From Penicillus capitatus (taxonomy: Eukaryota; Plantae; Chlorophyta), in contig OZ287696.1 in NCBI GenBank assembly GCA_965649825.1, forward strand, positions 1,159,101 through 1,223,100: DNA of 64,000 nucleotides, read 5' to 3'. Positions 3,593 through 52,727 of this stretch are shown here, piece after piece. Position 1 is the first letter of the stretch. Each line of letters begins with the position of its first letter. The translations under genes and the position numbers were made by a program. The notes beneath the pieces were generated by a model. That model saw only the letters and a program-made list of their open reading frames with translations, did not search any database and was not told the origin of the DNA.

Positions 3593-5717
3593 TCAAGCTG
3601 CAGATGGACCAGAATGACTCGCCTTCGCTGCGCTCAAAGCCGAATCACTGTACAGATACGTTGACACGCAACCAGACGACCTCTTATCCCGATCCCTTTT
3701 AGCGTGTGGACAGGGTGGACGAAGAGCTGCCCTCACAGCCGTTCGTATGCCGCACAAAATTCCTGTTTCCATGGCCAAGGAGCCTTCATCGCTTCTAGAG
3801 GACCCACCACATGCATCACTTAGAACACCATAAGGCATTGCACAAGGAGAGATCTGACCCAAGCTGTGGCATCCCTGAAGAAGAAAGCAGGATGCGACTC
3901 AGAGCATTGGAACGATGCTTCTTATTCTTCTTCTTGAACCAAAAACCACAGCCGCCAGACCAAGGAGTGATTCCTTCACTTGAGGTCACTGAGAAATCAC
4001 ATTGTACACTCCGATCCACTCTTGGCTGCAGTTTTCTTGACATGTGGGATGTGGATGTTTCCGATACATGTGTCATACGAGACTTTCGATAAAGACTGGG
4101 GGAAAGGACGTCCACTGTTCGACTGGTTGGTCGAAATTCAATGGTCGAGAAGGCAGTGGATGTCCAAGGGAGTGTCTCGGGAGTTAGCCTCCCAGGCACA
4201 GCATCGTGTCCTTGGTGATCTTCTGCAACAACCATACAGGTGTTTGTGCAGACGTATGTATAATGACAGACAGACAGACCTCTGACAGAAATGCCACTTT
4301 CCACAACATCCCAGTCGCTCGACTCGGCCAAGCTCGTGTAACGTTGATGGGTGTTCGTTTGTGCAGATGATGACGATGACGACGACGGACAGAGTGCAGC
4401 TGTGGCTGAATGGCATCTTCTAGGGGACGGGTAGGTGTCTTCGTTTGTCAACAGTACTTCAGAATCACTAGCAGCATCTCTTTCTAGTCGGGTTCGGACA
4501 CGGATAGCACACGCTGTTTCCAAACCACTCAAACTTTGACTTGAGTTACGCGAAAGATCTCCGAGCTGAATAGGATCTTGAGTAAAGACACGAAACGGTT
4601 GTTGAGAGCTGTCTCGATTTCTTGATGGAGTCTGAAATAGCTCCCATAAATCGGACGCTGTTGAAACATCGCGATGATCGTGATGGCAATGTTCATCGAA
4701 GGGTGATGCACGAGACAGGGAGAGTGGACACGAGATCATTGCATTCGTGGCATCGTGGACCCAAAACGCATTGCCTGTATAACGAGAAGACGTGGTAGAC
4801 GGATCGGAGGAAAGACTGAGTGTCTCTTCCAGAACAGGCAATCGATCGACATCTCTGAATCTTGAAGTTGGCCGCCTCTTGCCGTAGGCCAGTAAGTCTT
4901 GCTCTCTCGTTTGCTCTTCATTGGCATCACCATCGCTTGAAGGGTGTAGACGGATCTGCTCGAGACAGTCCACGGCTTCAAGGAGTTCGTTGTGTGTGAG
5001 AGGCACCGCGCTAGATGGCGTCAGTGATCGTTGCAGCAATTGTCGTTCACGAGGAAATCGCTCCAGAAGCGCCAGGGCATCTTCCAAACTCTCTGTCAGT
5101 TGCTGTCTCGCATCCTCCAAATCTGGACTGCCCTTCGGAGGTGCTTCTGCGCTGCATCGTGGAATACGGGATGCAAAACGCTGACGCAATCTTGGCGTTG
5201 TTTCCAAAAACGGCGACTCTTCTCCATCTCTTGTCTTTGTTACCGTCGCTGGCTTGGTGCTCGTTGCCATTCTTGTTGGCACATTCGAAGAAGATTTGAA
5301 GAGTTCGATGAGTTCCTCCACTTGCGATTGGCAACGTACAATATCTGTTAGAAGCAATTCTGCATTCACGGGTGGTGGTGGTTGTTGTTGTTTTTGTGGC
5401 ACGTGTCTCTCGCTCGGGTCAAAAACTTTCTTCAGAGAATCGCCCTCTGAAGCGCCTTCGGTAGAGGACCATTCGCCGTCATCGCCGTCGACTTCCACCT
5501 CATTGCGTATCTGCATCGCATCTGACTGTGCCCCCGTCATCGTCGCCTCCTCCGTAAAAAGATAGGAATAGCGCTGGTAGTTTTGGGGCGACGCCCGGCG
5601 CTGTTCGACGGCGGTGCGGGCACCGTCGATGGCGAACACATCTTCGGCGGCCTCTAAAGAAGCTTCGCAAGGAGAATCGTTGCGATTCCCTAAATAGTGA
5701 CGAATTCCCCTGTCCAT
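3593..5717 (-). CDS. Hypothetical low-complexity protein (Ser/Glu/Pro-rich)
   Basis: 633-codon ORF 3816..5717 with ATG. A probable short intron links it to ORF 3593..3862. No conserved domain recognised. Confidence 0.55.
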
Positions 5718-5841: not shown

Positions 5842-8800
5842 TCATGATAAACTGTCGACTGTCTTTTTGATCCATTCAGCCACTTCCGACCAATCTCCAG
5901 CCTGGCACAAATTCTTCAATTCCATGAAATTGGCAGTCTGCTGACCCAGTGTCATCTTATTGACGAAAGCAAATTTGTATTTCTTCGCTGTATCTGCATC
6001 GATGGTCTGGCATTCTTCGATGATCTTCGTGATGTGTGTGTACATGTCTGGCAAGTTGTCGCCTTGCTTTTCAGAATCTGGCTCTTTTTCATCTTCTTCG
6101 ACCAGATCTATGACGTTCTTTTGCGATGAATGTTCTTCCTGCTGTGCTGGATGCGTCAGCGGCTTCTCCGTTCCAGTACCAGATGCATCACTGCCTGTGG
6201 TGCTCGGATCGATGACAGTGATATCTGGCGATGTGTGTGAAATGCGATCCGCCGTTGCTGCTGCCGATCGCGCATTCCTCTGCGATTCGTTCGGAAAGAC
6301 TTGGCAGGGATAACCGACAGCCGGTTCTGCTTCGGAAGGATGGGAGTAGTTAACTGGCTGAAGATGATTTGTCCCGCGACCAGCAGGATGTTGAGTAGGG
6401 GCCTGAGATGTGACCAATCGCACCTGTCCGTGTGCATCAGTCACCATATACAGACCTCTGTCTGTTTTCTTCGCCAGGGCATTGACACCGCCACGGATGT
6501 TCAGACGGATGGGTACAGATGGCAAACACGCCGGACGCTGAACACGATGCTGCCTAGGATTGGTTGAGTGGATATACTGTGAAGGGGGCGGTGGTGTGCC
6601 AAACACGTGTCTCTTGTTTCCTGGTGTCTGAAAGGGCTGTCCATGGAGAGCGACGAAACCGGCTGATGTACGAATCATCGGAGCTGCATGGACAGCATTG
6701 GCTGGGATCACAAACAGGCCTCGGATTCGCTGATCTGCGGGAAACCCGGATACAGGGTCACGAATGAGTCCCGCTTCGACCAGCAAACGCCCATCTTGAG
6801 TTTTCTGTAGAATTTTGATTTCAGTGAGATGCTGTGCGTCGGATAGGACATTGGCATGTAAGATCCTTCTCGCTGGAGGGGCCGGAGACGGAGCCGGAGA
6901 AGGACGAATAGCGGCTGCTGGAGGAATATACATAGAAGCTGGTATCTTGGGCAGTTTTTGCGGACCACCTCCAAGTGGAATGGACTGAGAAAAGGAATCG
7001 GCCTAAAGGAAGGCATCCATCATAACCACGCCTGCATGTGACGAGGCAGTTCTTACCACGACAGCGTCTGGCAGAATGAAGACAGCGTAAGAGAGCTTCC
7101 AAAGAGCATTGGATTTGAGCAAGACCAAAATATCTCCAACGGTTAGTCCAATTTCATCTACAAATTGATTCCACACCGTCGCCGAGAATTGACAGTGGTC
7201 TTTTGCGACGGAACAGATGAAGCGAAAGGTCTGTTTGCCGCAAGCGTTGCTCAGTTCAACAGCACGAGGTCCCTCAACATTGTTAGAAGATGCGCCAAAC
7301 CATTCGGCCACCGTGCCTGATCCATCGCCGCCATAAGCAGGAGTGCATAAATGGATGATGCCTGCGCTTACTGGGCAGAAGGACATGTTCTGTTGCAACC
7401 GTAATGTTGGCATGCGTCATTCTGAGCGCCACGGCATTGAGAGCCACTTGCACCCAATCTCTGCTGTCTCTTAACAAGGCGGCCATATTCGGGTCGCAGA
7501 TACGCCTCTCCACTTTCATCTCTTGGCGCTTGACGGGGTCCGATGTCTCTTCCTCGACGTCCATGTCATCATTCTCTTCGCCCTCTGCACTCTGCTCGTT
7601 ATTGTGTCGTATGGGCTGGTCGTGAGCAGGTGCCTTCTCTTTGTCCAGTCCCAGCTCTTCCCAGTCAATACGCTGCAAGAAACAGTCCGCAGGCTTTCTT
7701 CCCCATGATTTGAAAGCTGCCATGGTTGTGGGGCCATCCAGTTTCTGCCGTTTCGATGCAGATCGGCCACGACCGTAGTGATCTCCCACGGAGCATGCTC
7801 TCTGATTATGTGCCATCATCCGAATGAAACTGCTGACTTGTTCGCTGTCTGCACAGTAAAGAAATGTCATCAACTGTCTGTCCTGGATGTAATCGTCCTT
7901 GGGAAAATTCAAGGAGACAATGGACTGACGATTCATCATGGCACGTTTCAGTGTAGCCAAGTCATACGCTCTTGCTGCCCCCTCCAAAGTATCAAATCGA
8001 CCCAGATAATGATATTTCCCACCAAACTCGACTTTTGAGTACGGTACGCCATCCCGCGAGAAATAAACACCTTTCCATTTTTTGCTATCTCTGATGTTTT
8101 TCACCCATGAATTTTGTGTCGGTGGTCCCTTACAGCTAGATGCGACGATGTCTTTCATCTCATCGGCACTGCAGGTTTGCGTTTGAACAGAGCGTCTGTT
8201 GTCCCTCGCGTCCGCAGGTACGGTCACATTACCAAGTTCGTCTTCAAAGCTCATCTTGCATGATTCGATGGTGTTCTGCACTTCTTGCATTTCATCAACT
8301 GCGCCTAAGTCAGGATGCAAATCCCTGAACATGTCAACCAGTTCGTCAAATCTCAGAACGACCATGAGACTAAGAACTCTCTCCAATCTCCCATAGTCTT
8401 CGAGTCTAAAGTTCGTTCGTGCAGTCGAAAGATTCTGTGAATTACTCATGGCACGTTTAAGAGAAGCCAAATCCCACGCCTGTGCTGCAGCAGCAGCTGA
8501 ATGATGAAAACCCAAGAAATGAAAATGATTGGCCGTCTGGATGATGCTGTAGTATACAGAGAGCTTTGAAAGAGCGAACACTCCACGAAAGCGCCCCAGT
8601 AGTTCAACCTCGTCTTTTGCTCGCATCATGTTCCTCGTCTTAAGAAGTTGGTGGATAGGGTTGACCGTGGTACAGTCTATTTCCGGCTCAGATGCCTTGC
8701 TGCGTTCGGAGGTGTCGTCAGGCATCATCTGGCGCTTAGAGGGAGGCAATTCAGTCGACGCAGTACCAGAGACATGCTGCAGGAGCAGCAATCCTTCAAC

Positions 8801-8857
8801 TGCCGGACCTTCTCCGCAATCACTCTTAGCGCTTCCTTCGTCTACACACACGCACAC
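5842..8857 (-). CDS. Transcription factor with two AP2/ERF domains, a B3-like domain and a long Pro-rich C-terminus
   Basis: AP2-1 is RFRGV...FLGFHHSAAAAAQAWDLASLK...NF. AP2-2 is KWKGV...YLGRFDTLEGAARAYDLATLK...LNFP. Introns 7317-7371 (55 nt) and 7003-7056 (54 nt) join ORFs 7283..8857, 7003..7413 and 5842..6933 in frame. The true start is uncertain. Confidence 0.8.
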
Positions 8858-9399
8858 GTCGCTACGTCCCGCGACGTTTGTGCAAAAAAACGTCTCGTTT
8901 GAACGCGACTTGCTTATCGTACGTCAAATTTAGAGAAAAGTTTAAGTCAAAAGGCCTCATGGTGAGTTTTGGGATCGTTACCTGAGGGACAACAGTGTTG
9001 CGTTTCTCGCTCGTCTGTCTTCTCGTCGGTGCTCATAGACTCAGCAGCTTCACTGTTTACCTTTTCTGAGGGTGCGTCCATAGCTGTCTTGGCAGCTCGA
9101 CTTGGCGCTCTTCGATTGAAATAGGTTACCTATATCCAAAAATAAAACCACGTACAAAGAACCGTTAAGTCACAAAGGACGCTAAGAGGAAGGAAGGGTC
9201 GACACAATAGTGGTTTGTGCGTTCGTATGAATTTCGATCCGCAGAGAAGGAGGCACTTACTGAGAAGCTACGCGCGTGGCTGCCCGGGCGAAGCTCCTAC
9301 GCTAAGTGGATACGTTACAGTGAGTCAAACCAAGCATAACCGCTTGAAATGACGACCAAGTAACACGCGAAACGCGGCTCGGTATGAAGTTCAAAAAGA

Positions 9400-12300
9400 T
9401 CACAAAAATCCAGAAATTGTGGTGCTTAGCCGCAGCCCTGACTCAACAAGGAGACCATGTCCGCGGGAACTGAACGGTAAAAAAACAAAACGGTTATTCC
9501 ATCGACGGTCCAAGCATTCCATGAGACCACAGAATTTAGCGTCCTCTGCACCGAACACGTACATCACATCTGTCATCGAGGCAACGAGAGAGCGAATGAG
9601 GGGCTCCATTTTTCCCGTACTCATTCCCACAAGTGCCTTGGCGAGTTCCTCGGGACGAGCACCCCTTTGCCTTCTCTGCAACACATGCAAGTACATGGGA
9701 TGACGTTGACGCAGCTGAGCCCACAGGGCACTGCCTTCATACCATCTCTTCAGAAAACGCTCATAAGGCAGGGAACTTGTTAGGATACCGGCCGTCTCCA
9801 TATCCTGCTGCAGTCGGGCTGCTCGGGTATCAGGGTTTTCAATCCCAGACGTCCCAGAAATGACAATGAGCTTGGGGCAATCCATATGCAACGCCATGTG
9901 CTGTGCTAAACGGCCTCCAAGGGAATAGCCAACGATCGCATGAGGCGTTCTGCCAAACTGCTTAGCAAACGCACAGAGAGCGGCCGAGACACGCTCAAAA
10001 TCGTACATGTCATCATCGGCATGGGCTTCGCCAGGCTGAAGCTGTGTGTTTCCGTGTCCTGGAAGATCCACGGCCACACAGACGCATTGACTGCTTAGGT
10101 GATGCATAATTGGCAACCAGTCATTTGAGTTGCCTAAAAAACCGTGCAAAAATAGCACCACTGGATCATCGATTGAATTCTTGACTTGGCAATAGTGAAA
10201 CACATACACACCGTCTTCAGTGGCAACGGATTTCTGTAACGCCATTTCCTCGACTCGGTCGCTCTCTGGTTTGAATGCCTTGGCCTGTGCGAGCAATATC
10301 TGCCAAGAAGCCTCCAACATGATGCTGGGCTTTCTAAAGCAGTCTCCGTCGACATTCTGAAACCAGTCCACTGTTCCCAGTCCATGACGCGCTGGATGTT
10401 TCTGAATCCCATTCCTCTGTTGTGTGACGGCATTGGATATGGCTGCCAGTTCGCACAGGAAGGAGATACCGACAGGAGTCTCGAATGCAGATGATATGAC
10501 TGTCTTGCGATTCAGCGAAACGCATATCTTCATGATATGCACGAGGCGATCGATAGAGCCCATACAACTCGGCTTGAGGACACAGCTCACCACTCCTGGG
10601 CAGTGCTTAAGGAGCTCGGCCACGTCTGCTGGTCCTCTGCTCGAGGCAATACTCTCATCAAGAGCGACAGGAAGCTGTGTCTTCTCACAGAAGACGGCAA
10701 TGTCGTTCACTCGATTCACAGGTTCCTCGATGTACTCGAGATTGGGACAGGAGAGGTGCTCTGCGAAACGAAGAGCGTGGTCTATGTCCCAGGCTCGATT
10801 CGCATCGAGACGGATACTCAGTCGATCCCCGAATGCTTTGGAGATGCTGCTGATCACGTTGGCCTCCTGCTCTGGGGACTGACCTCTGCCAACTTTGATT
10901 TTGACGGTTTGATATCCCTGTTCAAGCAGATCACGACATCTCTCTATCGCTGTTTCCGCGTTTGAGATGTCTTCCAGAAGTGCATTCGACACGACTTCTG
11001 GATGATCTGCTTCGGGAGATGGACTCCAGAGTTTGTGGAGTGGGCGGCCTTGCATGCAGGAGAAAGCCATCAGCAATGCTGTATCAAAGCCAAAACGAAC
11101 AGTTGGGCTCATATCTGAGTCTTCAATTCCGTACGTATTGGACAACCAGTCACTCAAATGTCCATCCAACAGACATATCTCTCGAGGAACCTACACAGAA
11201 CCCCATCTCCACGATTCCCATGACATTGCTGCGTGTGTATACTTCTTGACCAATGAGTGCTCTTTTAAGGTATCGTAACTGTGGCATGACATCTTGTAAG
11301 GACTCAGAATGGAGCCCATCCAGCGGTGCGATTTCTCCAATCCCTGACCATTCTCCTAAACACTCATGGCCTTCTGTGTCGTCTGTATTGTCGGAATCTG
11401 CGTTCTTTTTCAATGTGATCCTCAACAGGATCCCTTCTCTGAACATTGCGGCGTTCCCTGTTGTTGGTCCCTTTCTCAAAGGAAGAGAAAAATGCTGCCA
11501 TGACAAATCTTTGATCACAGCCGTTTTCATCCGAGTCATGGTCTTGCAGAGATCTACAGCCCGAAGAGCTGCAGCTGCAGAAGCAGCTTGAATCTGCTGA
11601 TGCAGTTCCACGTTATTCTTCCTGCATTCAGAAGTGGGGATGTTGATATGATAATGATATGTGTGACCTGTCTGTGACAACTTCAATCACACAATGTTGA
11701 TGGGACTTCCACGCTGTGTTCAGAGCTTCCTTGAATTCGGTTGGTTTTGTGACGAGATTGTGGGCAACTCCATAAGCTTGGCACAGTGTGGCGATGTTGA
11801 TGTTCTGTGGAGTCGACCACAATGCGTTAAACATTTCCGGCACGACAGCGTGAGCGATGGGTAAGAAATCAAAAATACCGCCGCCGCCATTATTGATCAC
11901 CACGAGCGTCATTGGCGGCCATGCTTCGCTTCGAAGAAAATGCAGTCCATTGCTGTCATGAAAGAAAGAGATATCCCCAATAAGCAATGTCACTGGTTTT
12001 CTCAATCCAACAGCATAGCCTAGAGGACGACAGAAATGAGAAGTGCTTTTGGTCATAGCCCTTACCAATAGCTGCACTGATAACTCCATCGATGCCACTG
12101 GCTCCTCTGTTGGCAGCAACCTTTGCGAAAGGAGCGCCCTTGTGTGTAGCAACGCCTTTTTTACAAGTAACGCCACCAAATATGTCCATATCTCGAATCG
12201 GCATGCCGTTGCCCAGGAAGAGACCATGTCCTGCAGGGAGCAACTGACTGAGAATGAAAGAGACGTAGGGTTCTGTCATGCAGTCCTCGTGTGCTAACGT

Positions 12301-15300
12301 CGTCAGCGACTGCACCAATGAACGCGTCACAGTATGATCGACCGATTTCCATTGGCTCAAGTACATAGCATGATCGCTGTTCACCTCCCATTTTCGATGC
12401 ATCAGCAAGGCATAGATTTGAGGCAGCGAAACGGTCACTTTCAAGGTGACAAGGTGACATGGATCATCTCGCCAGGTGTCTCTCGAGACCTGGATCCATT
12501 CTGTCTGTGGATGCGTCTCTCTGCAACGCTGTAAGAACTGCATGAGTCTCTTGGATGTTAGGTGGCCACTGAACTGGAGAATCACATCTGGCGCGAGTGC
12601 CTCGCACGGCATTGGATCCATGGACAGAATCTGATCCGCAGTGTGGATGTAAGGCCATTCTGCGAGGCGATAGGGATTTTTTAACCCCGATAAAACGTCC
12701 ACGATGCACGGCCACTGAAGACGTTCGGCAATCTCTGCTGCGGCTGTTCGTTCGTTCGGCATCAGCAGTTCCCCAATGATCAACAATCCACGTTTGGCCC
12801 GTTGTACCTAAAGTGCAGAAGGATGCCACGTGACAAGAGCATGTGCCTTTTAACCTGATCCAATAACCGCTCTGTATCCTGCAGGACGCATGCCCCCCTT
12901 GTGAATCTTGTAAAACATTGATCCGATGACAGCCAATCCGCCAACACGCGATCTGTCGGGAGCTTCTGCTCGACTGTCTTTTCAATGGGCTCCAAAGGTT
13001 CATCGAACTGAAAATTGAGATGGACGGGTCCTGGAGGATCCATACAAGCATGACGCACAGCGGCATCCACAGTGGTCAGAAAGGCTCTGGAGATAGAGGG
13101 ACTGTTAGCCTCAGATGGCGGCGGGATATCATGGAAGTATCGTGTATAATCTCCAAACAGCTTCACTTGATTGATGGTCTGATTGCTGCCAGTGTTCCTG
13201 AGATTCGAGGGACGGTCAGCTGTCAGCAACAGCATCGGCACACGGGAAAGGCTCGCTTCGATGACTGAAGGCATGAGATTGGCAGTGGCTGTTCCTGAGG
13301 ACGTAATGATAGGAGCCGGACGCTGCGTCGCCCGAGCGTATCCAAGACTCCAAAAGGCCAGACTTCGTTCATCAATACATGGATAGACATGACAGTTGGG
13401 ATTTATGGCGGCGGCGTAGACAAGGGGCGAAGATCTGGACCCAGGCGCCACGGCAAACGTATGAATACCCAATCGACAGAGCTCTTCGACCAATAGACTC
13501 GCCATCCTGATATTGGCATTTGGAGACGATAGATAGGAGAGGCGAGACGAAAGCTGATGCTTGAAAGGTCGGACCTTGAGATCAAGTTCTTTCCATTCGC
13601 TCAGCATATCTGATTCTTTGACAGTGCCGACACCGGCAAAGAGGGACAGAGTGTGTTTGTTTTTGCCTGTGTCTTTGAAGAGACCAGATCGAATTGCCAC
13701 GATGAATTCTGCCCCTTGACCAGATAGCCAGCCAAAAGGCCCGGCGTAGTATCCTCTATCAAAGAGCTCTGTTTTGGCCAAGATCTCTTTGGCTGCTGTC
13801 TGCGGATGGCCGCACACTGCGGGAGTGGGATGCAAAGCGCTGAGAATATCGAAATCTGAGCGCGATTCTTTTAGACGTCCCCGCAAACGACCGTAGAGAT
13901 GCTGAACAGATGCTCTTCGAATGACACTCTTGTGCACATCCACATCCACATCCGAGCAAATGGTGCGAAGGGTATCGGTCAACCAATTGCGCACCAGAGT
14001 AAACTCAACATGATCTTTTGGATGCCGCATCAGTTCAAGCCCAATCAAGAAATCCTCTCTCAGATTGCCTGCAGCATGCTTGTGAGATCAGCTCGTCCTG
14101 GAGAACAAGACCTTTGGGTCCACGTGGTCGAGTTCCGGCAATAGCTTCGCTGATCACCTGATCGCCATTCCGCCTGTACAGTCTCTCCGGAGTGGAACCA
14201 ACAAAGGTCCCACCTCTTGGCAAACTGAGACAGAATTGATAGGCACTGGGATCGCAGTGCTACAGAAGCATCGTCAGGAACAGACAGTACCATGCTGTGC
14301 ACACTTGTAAATGCTGCAACATTGAATGGGGATAGAGGGTACCCTCGACGTCGAGCTTTGTTCGACGTGCCAAAACGATCTTGGCGAGGTTTTCGTCCGC
14401 ATCGCTGCTCTCCTCCTCTTCAACTGTATTCTGTGCGTTCAGTGCCGCCAGCAAATCATCGAGTCCCTGGCCCATATGTCAAGGAAAGATCTGTCTATAT
14501 CAAATGCACACACCTGCTGTCCAGATTCAAGGCATTCTCGAACAGCTGTCTCTGAATCGACACCACCGAAAAGATCTCCTCTGTGCTTGATGCTTTTGAG
14601 GTTTTCGCATGTGGTCGACACTAATTCCTTCCATTCATCAAGAGAAGGCACTTGAGTTTCTGCCATCCTGTAAACACACTCGTGTCGACACAATTTCGAG
14701 CCACATTCGCACGGGATCTACCACTGCACATGAGGTGCCAGCGTTGTATGTGAGGTGACAGGTGCAACGTCCTGCAGTATGTCGGCGACAACCTTCACTG
14801 CCTCGATGGGTGTCGACATTCCCATGCCACAAAAAGATGATGGACTGGAGAACGTCGCATCCCAAGCAAGTGTGCATACGAGGGTGTTGTGCTCTGGAGC
14901 TTCTATGAATTCCACTGCAGGGATAGAGAACAGATAACTTCCAAACTCTTTCCATTCGTCATCGATGCGTCGCCCGGCGTCAAATCTGCAAAGGATGGAT
15001 GAGGATAGAGATCATACCATCGGTCGATGTTGTTACGCACCGTGTGGCACCGATACACTTAATGGAAGGATTCTGGGGGTCCAAGAATCGGTGGATGTGT
15101 TCAAAGAGGCGTTGATCGGGGTGTTCTCCCTCTCTTCCTTTCCATAACCACGAATGTCCGATGCCACAGAAGACAGATGCATCGCCATCGCCTTCTTGTT
15201 GAAGATCGCACGTGGATTCATCCCTCTGACGGAAGTAGAAACTCATATGGCGTTGACATAGTCGTGTTTGATGCTTGAGCCAATTCAAAGCAGTTTCTCC

Positions 15301-18110: not shown

Positions 18111-19107
18111 TTAGCTTAATTCTGCCAAGACATCTGTCTCCCTGATGACAATGTACTCTGTCTCATCCTCTCCCTAATGTACAAAATGAAGATCTCTTCC
18201 CGTCAGCGATGCGCATGTGCAGCAAGGCAACCTGAAGATCCGTTCCGCTGTATTGCGAGTACAGTATTGTCGATCCGATTGAGACATTTGGAGGCGTCTG
18301 CTTATCATCGACTTTCTTTCCGGGACCAACGCTAACCACCTGCAACACGATGTCCAGATAATATGACACAGGCAGGGAGGGGATGCACTGTTCCAAATGT
18401 TGGCTTTTCCGTTGCCGCCGATGTTAAAAGAACACCTGCGCTCGTTTTTTCTTCGGATTTGGAAACCTGCATGCAGCGAAGCTATACGGCAGGGCGCAGT
18501 GAGATAGATAGATCAGAGGACTTTGACAAGGATGCGATCACCCAGAGGCTTGAGTTTAGAAATCTCTGTTCCTGACATGATGCCGATTACATCTTCCTCC
18601 TGACATCCCAAAAGAGTGAGAAATTTTGCACACTATGTATGTATGCATGCTTTACTTTCAGCAGAACATGAGCAGCGCCGTCAACCGACAAATCCGTCCC
18701 CGAGTACTTTCCGTAGATCACATGATCGCCGACCTATCTCTGCACTCTTACTCAAAGCAGAGATCTATTATGAAGTGTGACTTTGAGTGCGCATCCCTCA
18801 CTGACTCTCGTAATGTCCCCTTGTGTGGATGCTTTCTGTGCCGAGGTCGGCAGCACAAGCCCTCCGGCTGTTTTGATGTCCGCCTCGCGCACCTTTACAA
18901 AGATCCGCTCTCCCACTGGTGTCACCTTCTTAAACTGCACACGATTGACGCATGGATCATTCAGTGCAGAGGTGGGTGGGTGGGCACTTGTTGAGGAAGG
19001 GTCGTGACGGCGGCGGCAACACGAAGACGCGCTCGGCCGAATCGCCCTCGTCGAACCGCATCGCGTTGGCCGATCGAACGTCGCACACATACGCCTTGAC
19101 TGTTCAT
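18111..19107 (-). CDS. CPN20: Plastid 20 kDa co-chaperonin (tandem GroES domains)
   Basis: Transit peptide MNSQGVCVRR..., then TPVGERIFVKV...TAGGLVLP. Second domain VVSVGPGK...ILYSQYSGTD and YIVIRETDVLAELS-TAA. Confidence 0.9.
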
Positions 19108-19179
19108 CTTCTACTGCGGCCTCTAGCAACGTTAACACAAGCCCTAACGCACAAGCACTTCGTACGGCACGAATTGCCA

Positions 19180-21003
19180 ATGGAATCGCGGCCCTTTCGC
19201 ATTGAAGACGGAAACGAGAATATCTGCGGCGCCTGTTTGCGCTCAGGCGTTCTCATTTGCTGCGAGAACTGCCCCGCAGCATTTCACCCGGAATGCGCAG
19301 GGTACCGCGACATCAACAGCGTCCCTGACGGAGACTGGTTCTGCTTTCTCTGTTCCCGCAAACTTGGCCTCCCTTTCATCACGGGAACGACCTTTCCAAA
19401 GTCTGTGGGTGAACAAGTGATGGTTGCTTGCGACGAACACAACGAAGTCTTTGCCAAAGCGGTGGTCACAGATGCAAGCGCGACGCATGTGACGCTCAAG
19501 AGACATGCCCGAAGTCGGACATATGCCGTTAACGATGCAAGACTATGGCGTGGGACAACAGACGATGCATCGTGGACGCAAACCCCCGAAGGGGAATATC
19601 GTCCCAACAGTCGTGCGTTTGAGATCGACTATCAGCAGATCGCATCGATGGAGGAGGAAGCGACGGATTCGATGCCGTCGAATCTCATTGAAGGCGGCTA
19701 TGCGCATTTCTTGCACTTTAAGAAAAGAGAACCGAAAGAGAAGCATTTCTTGGACCTCCTGACGCATTTTTGGAAGGTCCATATCAAAGCAGAAGACATA
19801 CAATGGCCTTCCTTTGGCTACATCGTGCCCCTCGCCGATCTCTGGTGCGTTTCTGTTTGAGATATAGATGGACATTTGCCTTCATAAGCGTCGTGCGTCT
19901 GTGTTAGGGATTGCGTCCAGAAACGGGGCGGATTTCAGACAGTCTGCGAACGAAATGCCTGGGACGAGATTGTGGAAGAGATGATGCCAAATCATGATCT
20001 GGTGCATTTTGGCTTCGTACTCAAACATATGTTTCAGACGGTGCTGTTGGATGTGGAGTCGAATGGCGGCGTGGAGGCGATGGAAATCATGAAAGCATAC
20101 CGACCTGTTCCTGAAGGCAGAGGCGATTCCCTAAACGAAGGGTCCGTCGTGGAAGGCAATGCGAAGAAACGGCGAAGGAGGTCTCGGAAGAAACGGAGAC
20201 TGCCGATCGCGGACGAATGGATTTCGTCACCGAGGGTGCCGCCGCCGGAAGACGTGTTAACTCCAACAGGACCCGCCATTCTGCAGACCTGGCCACAAGT
20301 ATACTCTGCCAGTCGTGCTGTACAGGAATACAGAACAGCGATCGGAATCGTTTCCCTTACAGAAATGGCGCGAAATCTGAACGTCGGGGACAAAGTGGAT
20401 GTCCGTCTCTATAGAGATTCGAGTTTGGGACCGTGGAGAGCCGCGCGGATCATGACCATCGCGACGGCCAGTGCGTTCGAAGGCTATCGACGTTTTCGCG
20501 TGAAGTTCAGTAAATCGAAAGATCCCGATCAGTTTCCGTCGCTCCCCGAGGAATGGGTGACGCTTTTGGCTCGACCCAGTGCATGGGGTACAACTCTGTC
20601 CAAACCGTCCGTTCTTGTCCGCTCCCCTCTAAAACCATACTTTCCACCTGTCAAATCATCCATCACACTGACACTCCGTGTTGGAGACCGCGTGGAAGCG
20701 TGGCTGCACAACGGCTGGTGGCCGGCAGCAATTTTGAGCATCAAAGACGATCAAGTGCTCCTCCAAGGCGATGTGATTCCGCTGGGAGAAGGTCTAAAAT
20801 GGATCAGCTCGTTGAGTTTCCTCCGTCCAGTGCCGGTGAGAGAAGAAGACGGTTACGGGATGATCGAACCACTGGACATGGACGAGGACATCTATCCTAA
20901 AGATATGGAGAAGAGACTAAACGTGACGGTCGACAAGACCATCGACGGGCATCTGATTCTGAGCTTCAAACGCCTGGACCAGAGACCTCAGAGAACTCGA
21001 TAG
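19180..21003 (+). CDS. Chromatin protein: PHD finger, ARID-like domain and Agenet/Tudor-like domains
   Basis: PHD CGAC...LICCENCPAAFHPEC...DWFCFLC. Splicing gives ARID-like LADLWDCVQKRGGFQTV...AWDEI...LKHMFQTVLLDVE. C-terminal VGDRVEAWLHNGWWPAAI is Agenet-like. Confidence 0.8.
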
Positions 21004-39082: not shown

Positions 39083-41867
39083 ATGGAGATCGAATCGATC
39101 GACGACGAAGAGGTCTCGAAGATCGCGTTCACGGCTGAATGCTCATCAGAGGTGACTGCTCGTCTTCCGGATCGGTGTCGCAGCTGGGCGATGACGCGAT
39201 CGGCTGTTCGACAGGACGCAGAGCATCCCGTGTTCGAGCTGCTGCGCCAGACTAAAGAGACGCGCGGATGGCAGTCCGCAAAGTCGACAAGCGCGTCGCT
39301 GATGTCTCTGCGATGGAACGTTGGTTGCAGGAACTGTGCGTATCCGCAAGAGCTCCTCCTGCGCTTCGACCGTTGCGTCCGAATCAGACAGATCCAGCTG
39401 CTCTGTCACGAATTCAAAGTCCGGGTCTGCAAGTGTCGCCGCAGTTGGTGACATGCGGTCGCAGATTTCGTCGAGAATCGAGCTGAGCGTGGGGACGGTT
39501 GTTCGGCAGGACGAAGAGGACGTCCTCGAGTGGACGAAGCTCGGAAGTCTGTCGTTCGACGCCAACGAGCGAAGCCGATTTCTGGCCCGAGAGCTCAAGA
39601 GCGTGCACGTGACGGCGGAGGGAGATGCGTTGAGGCTTCGGCTCTTCGACTGCCACGCAAACAGACTCAACGCGGACCGCCAAGTCTGTCGACGCACTCG
39701 GTGGATGATGGCGGACGGCGCTCGCCTTGCAGATCGGCGTCGTCGCTTTGAACGTTCTGGGGATGTACGTCGAACACGCGTCGTCGACTGAGGAAACGGA
39801 CGGCGGTCGACGACGTGGAGGCGGCGCTGAAGAAGACGCGGTGGCGTCGGCGGACCCGGCTGTCGGACAAGACCTGGACTCGACAACGCTCCCCGAAGTG
39901 CACAGGCTGCAAAGGTGCGACAGAACGAGGGAGACCGCACTCCACGCGTACGCTCGATCTCTCGCCAGGCTCAAGGAGGTCGCCGTCGCAAACGAAGACT
40001 ACGACGAAGCCAAGAGGCTCAAGCATCGACTCGATCGCATCCGTTCCGTCGGGACTCGATTGGCCGCGCTCGAGAGGCAGAAGCGGCGAGCCGTGGAGGC
40101 CGAAGACTACGACCTGGCGAAGCAGCTCAAGGAAGAGATCCGGCGCATCCGGGAAGGGTCGTCGATGGACGGCGCCTCCTCGGTGGACGCGTTCGACGAG
40201 GGAGCGATCCAGGCTCTGACCGATGTCGACCTCCCGCACTCAGGTAGCTCCCGGAAAGGATGTGAAGGGGCGAGACGATGTCCTTCATCGCAGCGGAGCG
40301 CGTCCGGGGACGGGAGGCTTCGGTCGAGTCCACGGCTGCTCGGGCGGCGAACCGCGTGCCCGACTCCCTCGCCGGCTTTCGAAGCCAGCACGACGATTAC
40401 GATGAGCGCGCCGTCAAGGGAAGAGGCGGAACAAGCGACGTCGAAATCGATTCGCCTCCTGCTTACTCTCTCCCCGAGTCGCCGGCCTCGGCCGCGCCCG
40501 ACGCTCCGGAAGGATTCCCTCCAGGTCTCCCGTCGCCGGAGCCCCTGGCGGATGCGCATGCCAAATCCGCCCAGTCGCTCGAGCAGTTCGCCGGAGAGTT
40601 CGTCGCCCGATGCTTCTACTCCAGAAACTGGCACCTACGAGAGGCGTCACTGGTCTATCTGCAGGGCCACGCGGAGGAGCTGGCGCAGCCGGGTCAGGAG
40701 AGGGAGGGGTTCCGTCTGCTCTGCCAGGTCGCGGTGCGCGGACTCGGTGACAAGGTCGCCAACGTCTTCCTCGCCTCCGCCTCGTTCATCCGCACCATCG
40801 CGACAGGTAACATGACTCTCTCCAGGGATCTGCAGTTCGCGACGGCCGAGTTTCTGCCGATCCTCGTCGGGAAGCTCGGCGACACGAACCCTCGGATTCG
40901 AGACGCGGCGCACGAGTCGGTCCTGATGCTGGCGCGACTCAAGGACGGCGCCGTCAAGAACCACACAGGACTCTTCATCAGTCCCGTCAAGAAGCAGAGC
41001 GCCTGGCGTCCCGTCCTCGGCAGACTGGAGCTGGTCTCGGACCTGGTCGAGGTCATCGGCGTCGGCAAGGGAGGCTCTGCGGGTTTCGACGTCGACCAGT
41101 TGATGTCGTTCGTCGCTCGGGCGTACACATCGCCGAACGCGAGCGTACGGACCGCGGCCATCGGCCTGACCGCCAGGCTCGCGACCGTCGTCGGGCCCGT
41201 CGTCAAGAAATACGTTCCGGGCGACGTGAATCCCAAGGTGCGGCAGCAAGTCGATCAGGAGATCGACTTCGCGCTCGGAGAGACGAGTCGGCAGGCGTCG
41301 CCGGCCCGACCCTCAAGACGGAGTCCAGGGAGCGACGCGAGGACGCCCACCACCACCGGTAAGCCGACGCGGGCGTCTTCCGTCGACGCCCTCTGTCGCT
41401 CATCAGGCAGCCAGCTGTCGCCGAGCTCCTCCGCGGCGCAGCTCGAAGAGAATCCGGCCGTTCTCGAGTCTGCGCTGCGGAAACAGGAGCAGCTGCTGGG
41501 CGACGACCATCCAGATCTGGCCGAGGTGCTCACGAATCTGGCAACGGCGTACACGCAGCGGGAGGAGTTCGACAAGGCCCATCCTCTGCTGAAACGCGTG
41601 CTCGACATCAACGAAGCGCACTTTGGATGCGATCACTCGAACGTGGCGCACGCTCTGACGGACCTCGCTGTCTTTCACATGGAACAGGTGCAGAGAGTCG
41701 GTCGGCGGAAGGCAAAACGAAAGACGCCTTTTGTTGCCGGACAGGGCCAAGACGACGAGGGACGTCCGCTTCTGGAGCGAGCGCTGCTCATCCAAGAGAA
41801 GAATCTCGGCGCAGACCATCCTGACGTCGTCGCCATCAGAGATGTCCTTGCCGCGGACGACGAATAG
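39083..41867 (+). CDS. CEP104: CEP104/FAP256-like ciliary-tip protein (jelly-roll, coiled coil, TOG) with C-terminal TPRs
   Basis: N-terminal GWQSAK|NCAYPQELLLRF...IQLLCHEFK|ISSRIEL...LGSLSFDANERSRFLARELKSVHV...Q|IGVVALNVLG. Also AVANEDYDEAKRLK, a TOG (FYSRNWHLRE, KLGDTNPRIR) and kinesin-light-chain-like TPRs (LGDDHPDLAEVLTNLA). Confidence 0.88.
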
Positions 41868-42743
41868 GCAGACACAGAAATAGCTAGACCCGGCGGCGCC
41901 ACTCTCTTGCACCTCAAACGCCGCGGCCGTCCGTTCGCGCGAAGTCGAGTACGGTGAACGAGAAGTCATCGGATGTTTAAGCTCGTCGCTGTATACAATC
42001 TCCGGGTCATCAGCGTTGTTTGAGCGAGATGTGCTTTGCGATCGCAAACGCAAGGCCGTTCGATCGAACGTCTTTCGACACACGCCGATCTCCTCGTTCG
42101 TTCGTGTCCCTCGGTGGATACGAACGAATTCACCGACAACGTCTGAGGACGAACCCGGATCAGGTGCATCAGTATTGACAATCAAGCTTTGGCAGTTTTG
42201 TTAGACAGATATCTTTCGCCGATGCATTGATCTAATCGTCAGTATCTTTGATTGGACGGGCACGTGTCTTTCCGCTCCGATGATAAAGACCGTCATCCTC
42301 TAACATACAAGGTTTAGCAGGAATGTTCTGAACACCAGCAATCGAATGTCCTAGACAGTATATCCTACCGCCAAAGAGTAATGCGAGATGATACGGGCAA
42401 GCACGGATCTCTCTTTTTCGTCCTTGAGCTGTGTGTGTTCAGGAGTATCCATCTGTGACGAAGGCCTCTCTCCCACACTGGGTTGGTGCCGAACCTGCAT
42501 ACTCGTTCATGAATTTTCTGTAGTCTTGGATGTTCTTTCTTCAGTGTTAAATGACACTCGGCAAGAGATGCCATTGGGGTGGCAGTAGTATACAATCGAG
42601 CTTCTTTGTGGTAGGTACTCTGAGTCCTGCATGTTTAAACCGAGTCGATCGGACACACCTCTAGCAACCTGGACTGGGATGCATAAGGGACGTCTTATAC
42701 TGAATTTTCGACGCGTTCGTTATCGCGAGCCACATCGTCTACT

Positions 42744-47947: not shown

Positions 47948-50900
47948 AGCTTCCAGAACGGACTGGAGACCGTCCCCTGCACGCAGAATTTTGTACTGGC
48001 CCGATGACGACAGATCCACCACGGTCGATCCCAGTTTCGATCCTGAGCTTCGGCCACCGTCGAAGACGACGGCACAGTCCGGCCAGAGCTCCTGAAACTC
48101 AGAAACGCACACACTTGACGGATCTCCGCTCCTGTTGGCGCTCGTCAGCGCGATCGGTTTGCGCAGCCGACTGCACAGAAGGCGAGCGAACTCGGCATCC
48201 GGTACCCGCACGCCTAGAGATGCAGCCGAAACGCGAGATGGCACCGTGGGTTCCATCAGAACCTACCGATCGAAGGGAGACCTGGATTGAGCTCCGGTGC
48301 GAGGGGAGACGTCTCCTTCCGTCGGAGGACCGCCGTTACGGGTCCAGGAAGCAGGGCATCCAGCAACCCGTCGGGCAGGTGATGCACCTCGCACAGTCTG
48401 GCGACATCTTGAACCTCGGCCACGCACACGGCCAGCGGCACATCCGTCGAACGACCCTTCGTCGCATACAGGGCGTTGACGGCGTTTCCGTTCCCTGCGT
48501 CCGCCGCCAATCCGTAGATCGTGTCCGTGGGCAGGCCTATGCGGCGCAGAGGATGAGAGTGGAGAACGAGAAGCGAGATCCGGACCGACGAGTCTGCCTC
48601 TCTCGAGTTCCTCGACGCCTCTGTCGACGTGTTCAACGACGGCTGGAAGGATTCGTCCCTCGGCGTTGTCTTCGCCACCCGGAGAGCCCTTCCTCTCGTC
48701 TTTGAAACGCATATCCACGACGACCTGCGGTGCCGACAGTGGTTTCTCAGCTACGACACTCGGTACAGAGATGGCCACTCACCGCCAGATGATCGGACGG
48801 GTACACCTTGGAGGGACACGGCTTCCCTATCCTCTCGGGAGAGGGTATGGGAATGTCCCGTTCGACGTCCACGAAGCGCGGCTCGTACCAAACGTAGTCC
48901 AGCAGTCCTTTGAAGCCTTCAGTGAAGTTCGAGTAGGGCGTTTCCAGACCTGACACACAGCCGAACGTCTGTTAGACGTGATCGAACGAACAGCTTTCGA
49001 TCGTTCGTTCCCTACTCATCGCGCTTCGAAGCTCGAACGGCGCCTCGACGTCGATGCCTTCGACTGGATCCCCTTCGCCCTCGTCTGCGCTCTCGTACAG
49101 CCGCGACACGTCGTCTTCTGGTGTCATCTGGGCGGAGAAACAGACGGAGTCGGTGTCGAGCCGAGCAGAGGCGATCACCTTGGTCCAGCGGAACTTCCGG
49201 CACTCGCTCCACTCCCAGTGGTCCTTCCTAAGGCGGCCGTCGCGCAGCAGCGTCAGTGCGGCTGCGTCCACAAAGAGCGTTGCGGCTTCTGCATCGCCGA
49301 GAGCCAGACTGCATACCGTCGACTTTCCCGGTGGCCAGATCGACGCTGCTGTTCAGATCGCCGACCAGCACAAGCTGCGCACTCTCTTCAACGGATCGCG
49401 CCCAGACGCTCGCCCGGTGGAGCATGTCGAGGACGTGGAAGACGCGTATGTGCTCTCCGTGCGAATGAGAAATGAGATGCGTGTTCACCACGCAGAGCGG
49501 CTTCTCGCCTTCTCCGACCGGCTTCAGGAGGACCGCCTGGCCAATCGTCACCACGTTCTTGAGCGCCGTGCTCATGTTCTTGCACCCGGCGATCATCTCG
49601 CGAAAGGGCATGAGGTGTGCGGGAAGCTCGCCGTTCAGGACTTCGTTCATGTTCAGGCGGACATGCGCAGCAATCTGAGTGCATGCGATGCAAGGTTCGC
49701 GGCGGCGCAATCGCAGACGGACGCACCTCGAATCGCGATCGGCGGGCGAAGAGGGCCTCTCCCTCTCTCGTGGTGCCGCTTTTCTGCGCAAAGACGCCGG
49801 CGAATCCTACAGACACGACAGATGGAGGAGAGGGACCCTTCCGTTGACGTGACCTTCGGCCTGGAGATGGGGACGGTAGTAGGTGTCGAAGGCTTTCTGG
49901 TCGCACTCCTGCAAGCAGACAATGTCTGCGTGGTAGCCGAGCAGTTCTTTGAGCACAAGCTGCTTCCGCACGTCGATGTCGAGATCGCTGACAGAACTCA
50001 GCGTCAGTCTCAAAAGACAGGGGGCGAGGGCGCGCCTGGGGCTGCAGTATCCGAAAACGCTCTTCGCGTTCGGCCTCGAAACGTAGGAGTCGGCGAGGAC
50101 GTTGTAGGTGACCACGCGGAAGGACGGGGACTCTAGTGTCCGAGGCGTCAGCTCGTGTCGGCCGTCTCCGGACGCCTTCTCCCTTCCGGGAGCCACGGGA
50201 CCTGTCGACGGACGACACGTGCGTCTGTGCCGAGCGAGGAGGAAACGAACCCTGTTCGGCGAAACGCGACTCGCCGTGGACAGACGCTCCTTCTTCTGCT
50301 CCTTCGACGTCTCGGGCCACCGGCGTGCACTCGACTCCCAGTAAACGACCCACGTCTGGCGGTGCCGGAGTGTAGACCCTCTCTGTGGCAGCTTCCAACT
50401 TCGTCCACGACGTGCCTATCAACAGAATGCGATCTCTTCCTGACTGCCCCGCTAAAGTGAGCAACTTTTAGATGTCCTGGTGAACCACTGCCACAGACAG
50501 GCAGATTCGTCGGCGAATTCGAGCTGCACAAGACCCAGGTCGGCAGCAGTCCGGAAACGAACGCGGGCGCACTTCGCAGAGCGGGAAGACAGGGTGTCCG
50601 GCGATCGGCCTTTCGTTTAGACACATCTGGAATGGAGAAATGGAAGACGAAACGCGGACAGGCCTGGCTCACGTTCATGACGGTGGGCGGATTCGTCACG
50701 ACCTCGTAGCGCTTGTCGCCTGCGATCAGCCACCTCGCTCTTCGCCACGCACGCTCGTTCGTCACTGCTTCGTCGACCAGACTGCAAGAATCGCCACCCT
50801 CTGCGAGACGGGTGGATCGGACGGGCAGCAACGCACGTCGCTTCGGAGTCGGACGCATAGAGAGCCACGGTGACCGGTTGTTCTTCGACCCCGTCACACT

Positions 50901-51346
50901 CTTCCTGACCGGCTCGCTTGTTCCTTCCCTTCTCTAGCATCCAACTGGCTCGTTCTCTGGAGTTGGCTTGGCGGCGGCGTCTTACTCTTGTCGGAGCGGA
51001 GGCTCAGTCGGAGTCGATGCAAGGATCGGCTCAGCTCCTCTCCCTTGGGTCTGCCAACACACATCTGTTCTGCCATGGACTCCGTGCGATCGAGGGGGAC
51101 CGGTTGAGCGTCCGCACTCTGTCGCGGATGGTGAGGGTGATTGTCAAGTTCTCTTCGGCGTCGGGAATGCGCACGACGGCCTGGTCGCAGACACGCGTGA
51201 TCGAAGGACCGGACACTCCTCGAGCGCACTTTCTCTGCGCTGCTGCCAGACATGTTCGGCGCTGCGCCGAGTGCGAGGGACGCTTTGAAGAAACGCGGAC
51301 GGAAATCGCGGCGCAGTAACGTCAACGGCGAAAAGGGGGCGTGCAT
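47912..51346 (-). CDS. PDE12/CCR4-like EEP phosphodiesterase fused in frame to YrdC (threonylcarbamoyl-AMP synthase), with a transit-peptide-like N-terminus
   Basis: EEP motifs FRVVTYNVLAD, DIVCLQE, VNTHL, GDLNS, GLLDYVWY and PSDHLA. Intron 48725-48782 leads to VVVDMRFK...GRLV|GLPTDTIYG, KGR, PGPVT, GVRVPD, TSANRSG, DGG and STVVD. Confidence 0.9.
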
Positions 51347-51390
51347 GGCACTGCCGATCACATTCCGCAGAAGGACAAGGCGATTGCCTG

Positions 51391-52727
51391 TTAGGTACGA
51401 CGTCCCATCGTCTGGGGCACAGGATCGGCTGGTCGCAGATCCGCGAGGGTCAGCGCCGACACGCGCTCATCGCCCGGACGAACAGCGCCTGAACCGTCTG
51501 GACGCCTTCCCCCATGCACTCCGTCGTCTCTCTTCCTCCTCAGCTTCCTGTCCCAAACCTGTCCGATGGAGATGGCATCCTGGATGTGGCGAATCGACGT
51601 TGTGCTGGGGTCGATTCCGAGGTCCAGCATCCTCGATAGGATCTCCACTGCCTTCTCTGGCATTGCTTTGACGTGACAGCTCTTCAGGAGCAGCTCGAAC
51701 GTCTCGCTGTTCGGTCTGGTCTCCGACGATACGCCGAGTTCGATTCTCCGCATCGCGGAATCGAAAACCTCCAAGGCTGCCGAAAACTGAAAGCCAGTCG
51801 TCTGCGTTGTCCGGAAGGTCGTCTGCCGCTCACTTGGTCTGCCTTGATCAACGACTCGATGACGGCTTCGAGGAGATCGACTGGCATCCGACAACCGCTC
51901 AGCCTCGCCCCCTGCGGCAATTCTCGAAGTTCAGTCTGTCGACTGGACTCGGCAGCCGGGTCGACACTATAATCGCTCGCGGGGGAGCCCATCGGCCAGC
52001 CGCTTTCAGAAGCGAGACGATCGTCCATCAGTTGCTGTTCGAAACGCGGACCAAGTCGAGGAATAGACAATCGAGAACGAGGGTGCGATCGGCGGTATTT
52101 GCGAGGCAGTTCGAAGCCGCTCGCCGTTTCCTGTTACATCGTCTCGTCGTCAGTCGACCGCAAGTGCTGATCCGGGTTCTCGCAAATCGATAGGCCTCCA
52201 ATGGATTGTTGCTCTAACGTTCGAATTTGTGTTACATCCTCTTCAGTCGTTTTCTGCAACAAAGAAGAGCGTCTCCTGACTAAATCGGTTGTCAAGAATC
52301 GATTCAGATCGTCCACCAAGCCGACGCTCTGAAAAGAATCTTACTCGTGCATGCATCTCACAGACGAGAAAACAAACGTCACCGAACTGAATACGCGTCG
52401 CAATGAAACAAAGATTTGCCGGAAGCAAGAAACGACCCATCGGTAAATCCAGACGAGCGATCCTTCATCGACGTTGCAGCGATGAACAACAGACACAGCT
52501 TTCCAAGAGCTTCTCAGGCGAGGGACACTCTTCTGTGTGCGATCGTGCAGGCAAGTGCCACAGCAGTATGCACTGTCGACGACGGTTTCTCCAACAGGCT
52601 GATGATGCCGGATCGCCTGGAAACCGCCGATCGAGGACGACCAGATAAGCATAAAACGCACGCGATGCTCGATCGATCGCTGATGGATCGTCCACAGAGT
52701 GCGAATCCGTTGCGCTCTCGTGTGCAT
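51391..52727 (-). CDS. Pentatricopeptide-repeat (PPR) protein, probably organellar
   Basis: PPR-type motif PNSETFELLLKSCHVKAMPEKAVEILSRMLDLGIDP and a preceding LLEAVIESLIKADQ|FSAALEVF. Arg-rich N-terminus from ATG 52727. Upstream exons are approximate. Confidence 0.68.

Follow-up and report, generated by a model that had tools for sequence, protein, structure and literature searches.

The locus examined here raises the question whether two separate reading frames on the minus strand of a Penicillus capitatus contig belong to a single gene, whose product would combine two AP2 domains with a B3-like domain, and, if they do, how such a protein relates to the RAV family of transcription factors. 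The window, i.e. the whole stretch of DNA that was analysed, comprises 64,000 nucleotides (nt) of contig OZ287696.1 (assembly GCA_965649825.1, positions 1,159,101 to 1,223,100 of the forward strand), and all coordinates below refer to it unless another sequence is named. In the prevailing account, the B3 and AP2 proteins of chlorophytes are separate and the combination of the two domains arose in streptophytes, where RAV and ARF are both held to descend from an AP2+B3-like ancestor (PMC5873896, PMC11685440). We read the locus as a bryopsidalean AP2-AP2-B3 gene encoding a probable nuclear regulator of transcription, assembled in chlorophytes independently of RAV, and we consider this reading as a whole likely to be correct.

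Gene structure and splicing

The gene is a nuclear gene of four exons on the minus strand, with the coding sequence (CDS) running from 9081 to 5842, a TGA stop codon at 5844-5842 and a product of 996 amino acids (aa). Unspliced, it appears as an open reading frame (ORF) of 524 aa (8857-7283) and, further on, another one of 363 aa (6933-5842). When intron 1 (7317-7371, 55 nt, GTAAGC...TCAG, phase 1), already proposed in the first-pass annotation of this stretch, is excised, the peptide quoted there, ...VALRMTHANITVATEHVLLPSTVAEWF...GKQTFRFICS...VWNQFVDEIGLTVGDILVLL, is reproduced exactly. Intron 2 (7003-7056, 54 nt, GTAAGA...TTTAG, phase 0), likewise of the GT-AG type, connects the spliced product in frame with the second ORF. 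Exon 2 (7372-8841, within ORF 8857-7283) contains a conserved N-terminal motif, both AP2 domains (AP2-1 and AP2-2), a KRQK patch resembling a nuclear localisation signal (NLS) and also the initial third of the B3-like domain, which is interrupted by intron 1 and has its remainder in exon 3 (7057-7316). Exon 4 (5842-7002) codes for a low-complexity region with the short conserved motifs KILQKTQDGRLLV, FQTPGNKRHVFG and LYMVTDAHGQVRLV and for the C-terminal domain, and ends with the TGA stop.

The locus had originally been placed at 5842-8857. The 3′ end of this range, at the stop codon, stands, and the start of the gene is very probably upstream of it, at the ATG at 9081. The exon 1 that opens there (8982-9081, 100 nt) would code for MDAPSEKVNSEAAESMSTDEKTDERETQHCCPS and close in phase 1, and intron 0 (8842-8981, 140 nt, GT..AG) would join it in frame to ...DEGSAKSDCGEGPAVEGLLLLQH. 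The donor site (CCCTCAG at the end of the exon, followed by GTAACG) and the frame are retained in a close relative, L002, where exon 1 is 97 % identical and both the GT and the AG of intron 0 are conserved.

The comparison was made with three nucleotide sequences: L002, a 1.39-Mb contig from ENA with a syntenic copy of the gene whose product is 92 % identical; L003, a Logan contig from a third genome; and L001/P0003, a transcript-like Logan contig of 2275 nt that is 56 % identical. All six splice dinucleotides are retained in L002, the exons are 92-97 % identical and every exon indel is a multiple of three (exon 2, 92 % identity with 3-nt indels only; exon 3, 92 % identity with zero indels). 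Intron 1 shows 74 % identity and two 1-nt indels, as opposed to 92 % in the flanking exons, and intron 2 shows 77 % identity with one 3-nt and one 1-nt indel; GT and AG are retained in both. Applied to L002, the four-exon model gives an intact ORF of 989 aa. L003 has introns 1 and 2 at the same position and in the same phase with other lengths (42 and 46 nt), and L001 consists of a 5′ leader and one ORF uninterrupted across both junctions. The annotated proteins of Caulerpa lentillifera (EukProt g1599.t1, 1087 aa, 37 % identity at 99 % coverage), Bryopsis sp. KO-2023 (BSKO_00776, 1193 aa) and Ostreobium quekettii (1338 aa) align with the product end to end, and exon 4 aligns with their C-terminal halves.

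Purifying selection is visible along the whole gene. The ratio of nonsynonymous to synonymous substitution rates (dN/dS), calculated by the Nei-Gojobori method between the copy in the window and that in L002, was 0.078 for the whole CDS, 0.039 for AP2-2, 0.041 for the B3-like segment (29 synonymous and 5 nonsynonymous differences) and 0.046 for exon 4, while the C-terminal domain displays 8 synonymous differences and 0 nonsynonymous ones.

These data also bear on a reading in which the locus would give two products, with an AP2-AP2 protein stopping at 7283-7285 and the B3-like exon forming, with the ORF downstream of it, a separate gene or non-functional remnants. Automatic gene callers do split the locus (P0001, 522 aa, and P0013, 102 aa, with equivalents in L002 and L003) and the gene model of the window organism was derived by comparison. 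However, these callers take continuous ORFs and leave introns unmodelled. The read-through tail beyond the donor site of intron 1 is not conserved even in L002, from which it differs by frame-breaking indels; exon 3 shows the excess of synonymous differences given above; L001 and the three annotated eukaryotic proteins are continuous across the junction; and L003 shares the intron position and phase. We regard two products as highly improbable. Transcripts terminating at 7283 are very unlikely, as five comparative lines agree and the read-through tail is unconserved, and the comparison supports the spliced structure as that of a real gene.

Two observations concern the related sequences themselves. 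L001 contains a frame shift just past the B3 region (about 2040-2060), where the conserved motif ILQKTQDGRLLV continues in another frame, and this change could be either an assembly error or a genuine indel. The introns of the gene family are very short, with 55 and 54 nt in the window and the two of L003 located at about 4975-5016 and about 5283-5328; their position and phase are kept and their sequence is not.

Orthologues and distribution

The closest named relatives of the gene, from C. lentillifera, Bryopsis sp. and O. quekettii, all come from Bryopsidales, in agreement with the earlier impression of a chlorophyte-like genome. Several Logan contigs also carry the gene, and exon-sized ORFs of the exon 3 segment are seen in other Bryopsidales assemblies (P0013-P0016, P0018). 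According to the NCBI lineages, Caulerpa belongs to Halimedineae and Ostreobium to Ostreobineae (Bryopsidales; Chlorophyta, Ulvophyceae); Bryopsis we take to represent the third suborder, Bryopsidineae. The order of modules in the end-to-end alignment is identical in all full-length orthologues. Because the whole architecture is kept in all three suborders, the gene was already present in the common ancestor of Bryopsidales. The copy P0002/L002 may be a homeologous copy in a polyploid such as Halimeda (PMC11441479), or it may come from another species; the main conclusions are unaffected by this. In public records the orthologues are named only as 'hypothetical protein', 'unnamed protein product' or 'AP2/ERF domain-containing protein', and we found no published description of a Bryopsidales AP2-AP2-B3 family.

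When 1.84 billion representative proteins were searched exhaustively with a profile of the B3-like segment, Bryopsidales orthologues or exon-sized fragments were recovered first, followed by 84 weaker matches. Eighteen of the latter were examined (17 by Pfam scan and one by the name of its source) and all are multi-B3 proteins, with the named sources all being angiosperms. These remote multi-B3 matches, which are of the REM type, reach E values down to 3.7e-14, and single domains in them score about 30 bits at best. An AP2 domain is absent from all of the about 90 remote B3 matches. Relatives of the gene outside Bryopsidales were revealed neither by the search with the full-length protein nor by the exhaustive one with B3. 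Word-index homology searches with the short alignments of B3 and AP2-2 gave 2 matches each (566 and 17 candidates, respectively).

The two AP2 domains

Two AP2 domains had been suggested at about 8400-8600 and 7890-8085, and the AP2-like stretches indeed map to 8393-8590 (AP2-1, aa 118-183) and 7889-8077 (AP2-2, aa 289-351). AP2-1 is divergent, with FLG and AWD in place of YLG and RAYD. AP2-2 is of the YLG/RAYD type and nearly invariant across Bryopsidales; the two elements it carries are signatures of the AP2/ANT group (PMC6781369). The domains share 39 % identity (BLASTP E = 3e-14, hhalign E = 5.9e-20) and are paralogous repeats of each other. They are separated by a spacer of 105 aa (aa 184-288), which varies in length among the orthologues and is predicted to be part helical and part disordered, a portion of it having a predicted local distance difference test (pLDDT) below 50.

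The Pfam AP2 model (PF00847) matches only AP2-2 of the window protein, with 20.9-25.8 bits, and does not reach its gathering score of 33.3. Within the family, 7 of 7 members show a match to it in AP2-2 (best E = 8.9e-6; window protein, 25.8 bits), while single-sequence matches to AP2-1 were obtained in 0 of 8 members. Profiles built from the orthologues are more sensitive. Against PDB, both find WRI1 (7wq5), at 1.6e-11 for AP2-1 and 6.6e-13 for AP2-2, the profile of AP2-1 matching both AP2 repeats of this structure. Next come ERF96, AtERF1 and, for AP2-2, TEM1-AP2; the value for the last is 0.077, i.e. 11 orders of magnitude from that for WRI1.

AlphaFold2 (AF2) modelled the AP2 residues of the window protein itself with a pLDDT of 75.7, as two units of three strands and one helix each (strands E26-55 with helix H58-75, and E201-224 with H228-245), in agreement with the antiparallel three-stranded sheet of AP2 domains and the single helix packed on it. 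A Foldseek search of this model against PDB returned AP2 domains as all of its top 8 matches (TEM1-AP2, WRI1, ERF96), and the best of them was TEM1-AP2 with a target-normalised template modelling (TM) score of 0.73.

The B3-like domain

The segment joined by the excision of intron 1 forms a predicted B3-like pseudobarrel domain (7057-7513, aa 477-610). Its resemblance to B3, pointed out in the first-pass annotation, is faint when the window protein is taken alone: the Pfam B3 model (PF02362) gives 15.4-19.3 bits where its cut-off is 30.1, and the E value is 0.018 when the whole protein is searched and 0.0011 (19.3 bits) with the fragment, a match which is suggestive only. The picture is clearer in the family. 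The same model matches 6 of 6 orthologous segments (best E = 1.5e-6) and all 8 matches of the orthologue profile in PDB are B3 domains, among them TEM1 (E = 7.8e-5), RAV1 (0.0083), NGA1 (0.02), VRN1 (0.035), At1g16640 (0.18) and ARF1 (about 1), where the REM-type matches range from 0.035 to 0.18. The suggested search of the spliced protein with the two Pfam models has therefore a divided outcome, with matches to both domains that stay under the cut-offs in the window protein and become convincing at the level of profiles.

The fold was modelled on the segment of the orthologue P0003, 72 % identical to that of the window, with the two exon pieces of the window included as further rows of the alignment. 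The AF2 model has a pLDDT of 87.6 and a predicted TM score (pTM) of 0.83. Its top 27 Foldseek matches are all B3 or B3-like folds (ARF, At1g16640, NGA1, VRN1, TEM1, VAL1, RAV1, FUS3, LEC2 and the bacterial LlaJI.R1), with target-normalised TM scores of 0.53-0.66 to the entries of stand-alone plant B3 domains, which agrees with the pseudobarrel expected from the outset, in B3 domains an open barrel of seven strands with two helices. About 45 conserved residues N-terminal of the core matched by Pfam are confidently modelled as part of the domain. Judged from profiles and predicted structures, the B3 homology and fold are solid at the level of the family. The domain is nevertheless very divergent and its binding to DNA is putative.

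Other conserved parts and possible function

Besides the AP2 and B3-like domains, the protein has several conserved parts. The N-terminal motif PAVEGLLLLQH (8774-8806, aa 46-56) shows little or no variation among the orthologues that possess an N-terminus, and does not match the LxLxL pattern of the EAR motif. The basic patch SKRQKL (7739-7756, aa 396-401), with KRQK or KRMK at the same alignment position in the orthologues, is a plausible candidate for an NLS. The long low-complexity region holds several short conserved motifs. The C-terminal domain (5845-6057, aa 926-996, 71 aa) is conserved in all four full-length proteins and produced zero sequence matches in Pfam or PDB. We also looked for features known from related families: a PB1 domain was not matched in the whole protein or in the C-terminal domain, the [RK]LFGV or LFG motif (BRD) is absent from the window model and three orthologues, and neither a family-wide EAR motif nor a paired CxxC zinc finger was found.

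The layout would then be, from the N-terminus, the N-terminal motif, AP2-1, the spacer of about 105 aa, AP2-2, the NLS-like patch, the B3 pseudobarrel, the low-complexity region and the C-terminal domain. Such a protein is most likely a regulator of transcription that is nuclear and sequence-specific. The two basic AP2 repeats, of the YLG type of AP2/ANT/WRI1, would contact DNA via their β-sheets. The B3 fold could be a third DNA-contacting module, in a manner similar to the bipartite recognition of RAV1 and TEM1, or, about as likely, a module for binding partners, given its acidic charge and the lack of conserved basic residues. The conserved modules at both termini might recruit co-regulators or mediate oligomerisation.

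Several points weigh against our reading. Exon 1 is based solely on conservation with one close relative, L002. The Pfam AP2 and B3 matches of the window protein alone are both under the curated thresholds, and the predicted B3 structure is that of an orthologue sharing 72 % identity in the segment and not that of the spliced sequence of the window. Several of the canonical DNA-contacting Arg and Trp positions of ERF-type AP2 domains are presumably substituted, as far as the sequence can be read against the textbook contacts of ERF1. Four of six orthologues have a B3-like domain that is acidic or neutral, and in the window protein its isoelectric point (pI) is 5.9, which is atypical for a DNA-binding B3 domain; the invariant residues of the domain are those of the hydrophobic core, two Cys and the WKLxY strand, a Lys in the last strands being the sole invariant basic residue. 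The best PDB matches of the B3 profile, finally, belong to the RAV family (TEM1, RAV1, NGA1), which leaves common ancestry with RAV some probability.

The unusual charge and the pattern of invariant residues speak for a different role of the B3 fold in the same gene, namely that it is a protein-protein or ligand-binding module and that DNA is bound by the AP2 domains only. The domain of the window protein has a net charge of -2, with a range from -7 to +5 across the orthologues, the segment aligned with the WNSSQSY loop of TEM1 is unrelated to it in sequence, and the conserved stretch of about 45 aa that extends the domain N-terminally is additional to the usual core. However, the DNA-contact residues of B3 domains vary by subfamily, so little weight attaches to their absence, the fold matches structures of B3 domains bound to DNA, and the purifying selection on the segment is compatible with either role. 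We would give a role in binding partners or ligands a little less than an even chance.

Relationship to RAV and other families

In its design the protein resembles the RAV family (RAV1, TEM1/TEM2) and the charophyte proto-RAV, as AP2 precedes B3 in one polypeptide, the closest solved structure to the B3 profile is the B3 domain of TEM1 and DNA recognition by multiple modules is likely a common logic. The differences are numerous. RAV has one AP2 domain and the window protein two, so the definition by one AP2 and one B3 does not apply to it; the AP2 domain of RAV is RAV/ERF-like and those of the window family are WRI1/AP2-like (YLG); RAV proteins come with PB1 (algae, bryophytes) and BRD (R/KLFGV) and the window protein without either; the B3-like domain of the window family is acidic and split by a conserved intron, whereas the B3 domains of RAV are reported to be intronless (PMC2688026); and the conserved C-terminal domains differ. 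RAV has been reported in streptophytes only (PMC5873896, PMC11685440), or even as unique to higher plants (PMC9408559), and the window family is confined to Bryopsidales. When the profiles are used as a test for the RAV clade, AP2 favours WRI1 over TEM1-AP2 and B3 marginally favours TEM1, RAV1 and NGA1. By the two AP2 domains, their WRI1-like type and the lack of BRD and PB1, we classify the protein as RAV-like in design and not as a member of RAV.

The comparison with the AP2 subfamily (euAP2/ANT/WRI1) concerns the repeats. This subfamily likewise has two AP2 repeats with features of the YLG/RAYD type, and WRI1 is the best PDB match for both repeats of our protein, including the NFP.E.Y..E...M tail after repeat 1. 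The linker between the repeats of the subfamily is short and conserved, at about 25-30 aa, in contrast to the 105-aa variable spacer and the additional B3-fold domain of the window protein, whose repeats are also more alike to each other than to an R1/R2 pair. An AP2-subfamily tandem was considered for the two AP2 domains and rejected on account of this spacer.

The first-pass annotation had started from the premise that RAV proteins have one AP2 and one B3 and that AP2-subfamily proteins have two AP2 domains. This is incomplete, as the TcA3Bz1 class of land plants has B3, three AP2 domains and a zf-C3Hc3H zinc finger (Taxus, Ginkgo and Marchantia PTQ32953.1; PMC6781369). The class likewise has more than one AP2 plus a divergent B3 in one protein, and by analogy shows that architectures of several AP2 domains with B3 have arisen outside RAV. 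According to its published description (PMC6781369), its B3 stands on the N-terminal side of its AP2 domains, three in number, and the class also has a zinc finger, with Agenet too in Marchantia; the window protein is AP2-AP2-B3 with no CxxC and, given these differences in domain order, AP2 number and zinc finger, falls outside the class.

Among chlorophytes, Chlamydomonas and Volvox each have one ABI3/HSI-like B3 gene (PMC2688026). The B3 proteins of chlorophytes have been described as separate, with an AP2+B3+PB1 'proto-RAV' first occurring in charophytes (PMC5873896), and a broad survey found RAV- and ARF-type B3 in streptophytes only, chlorophyte B3 being ABI3/HSL-like or of the REM clade (PMC11685440). 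These proteins share the B3 fold with the window protein, but they have not been reported with AP2 domains (PMC2688026, PMC5873896, PMC11685440), of which the window protein has two. The earlier description of the combination as unusual holds in so far as AP2+B3 is streptophyte-only in the literature (PMC5873896, PMC11685440); with TcA3Bz1 (PMC6781369), several AP2 domains together with B3 do have a precedent.

Whether the combination is also of independent origin, as had been raised as a possibility, is best weighed against deep homology with RAV, in which AP2+B3 would have existed in the ancestor of Viridiplantae, AP2 was then duplicated, PB1 and BRD were lost and the gene disappeared from other chlorophytes. 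The shared N-to-C order, the B3 profile with its best values on the RAV family (those of the REM type and of ARF being weaker) and TEM1-AP2 as the structure that best fits the AP2 model are in line with such a history. However, the AP2 profiles are much nearer to WRI1 than to TEM1-AP2 and AP2-2 has the YLG of the AP2/ANT group (PMC6781369). PB1, BRD and the LFG motif are all absent, the order-wide intron splits a domain reported intronless in RAV, both searches failed to find kin outside Bryopsidales, RAV- and ARF-type B3 were restricted to streptophytes in the broad survey, and the differences in score among the B3 subfamilies are small. We consider deep homology unlikely. Most probably, the chlorophyte lineage brought AP2 and B3 together on its own, independently of streptophyte RAV, an origin which is favoured, though not proven, because of the WRI1-like AP2, the B3 split by an order-wide intron, the lack of kin outside Bryopsidales and the lack of PB1 and BRD.

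That an AP2-AP2-B3 protein is conserved throughout the three suborders of Bryopsidales implies either a convergent combination of modules in green algae or a combination older than thought. If AP2+B3 predated the split of chlorophytes and streptophytes, the proposed ancestor of RAV and ARF would shift out of streptophytes. It seems rather more probable than the opposite that a RAV-like design was invented twice, here from AP2 domains of the AP2/ANT type and a B3 that was REM-like or an orphan, or that AP2+B3 is older than that split, and that in either case surveys missed a chlorophyte family. Surveys based on domain thresholds would have missed it because its B3 scores under the Pfam cut-off. 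Censuses of algal transcription factors based on architecture undercount such fusions, as default thresholds do not reveal the B3 domain and an intron splits it. The lineage-specific AP2-AP2-B3 architecture with its cryptic B3 domain bears on how plant transcription factors evolved and on how regulators are annotated in algae. A bryopsidalean alga is one giant cell with many nuclei and a complex body plan, so strongly conserved regulators specific to the lineage are natural candidates for work on its morphogenesis.

Genomic neighbourhood

Directly upstream of the gene, at 9400-14048 on the minus strand, lies a PHYLLO-like fused gene of the phylloquinone pathway, recognised in three pieces (Chorismate_bind with TPP_enzyme_N; TPP_enzyme_M_2; MR_MLE_C with an α/β-hydrolase). 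Since this neighbour is also found in L002 and L003, synteny is conserved. Immediately downstream on the minus strand there is an ORF of 633 aa (3816-5717) with no Pfam match, and L002 and L003 have genes of similar size in the corresponding position.

Further away, an ORF with a PHD finger (18952-19860) adjoins an Agenet ORF (19972-21003) on the plus strand, and the two are probably exons of one chromatin-reader gene. Two islands stand out by their GC content from the about 50 % seen elsewhere. The one at 40000-42000 (64 % GC) contains a CEP104-like ORF with TOG and TPR (40278-41867), and the one at 48000-52000 (61 %) contains long overlapping ORFs on both strands, among which ORF 49054-50136 has no Pfam match. 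A minus-strand ORF at 58932-59699 combines a bacterial-type SSB domain with HTH_40 and may code for a single-strand DNA-binding protein targeted to an organelle. The plus-strand ORF 30649-31524 matches the C-terminal half of ribulose-phosphate 3-epimerase and is presumably a single exon of that gene.

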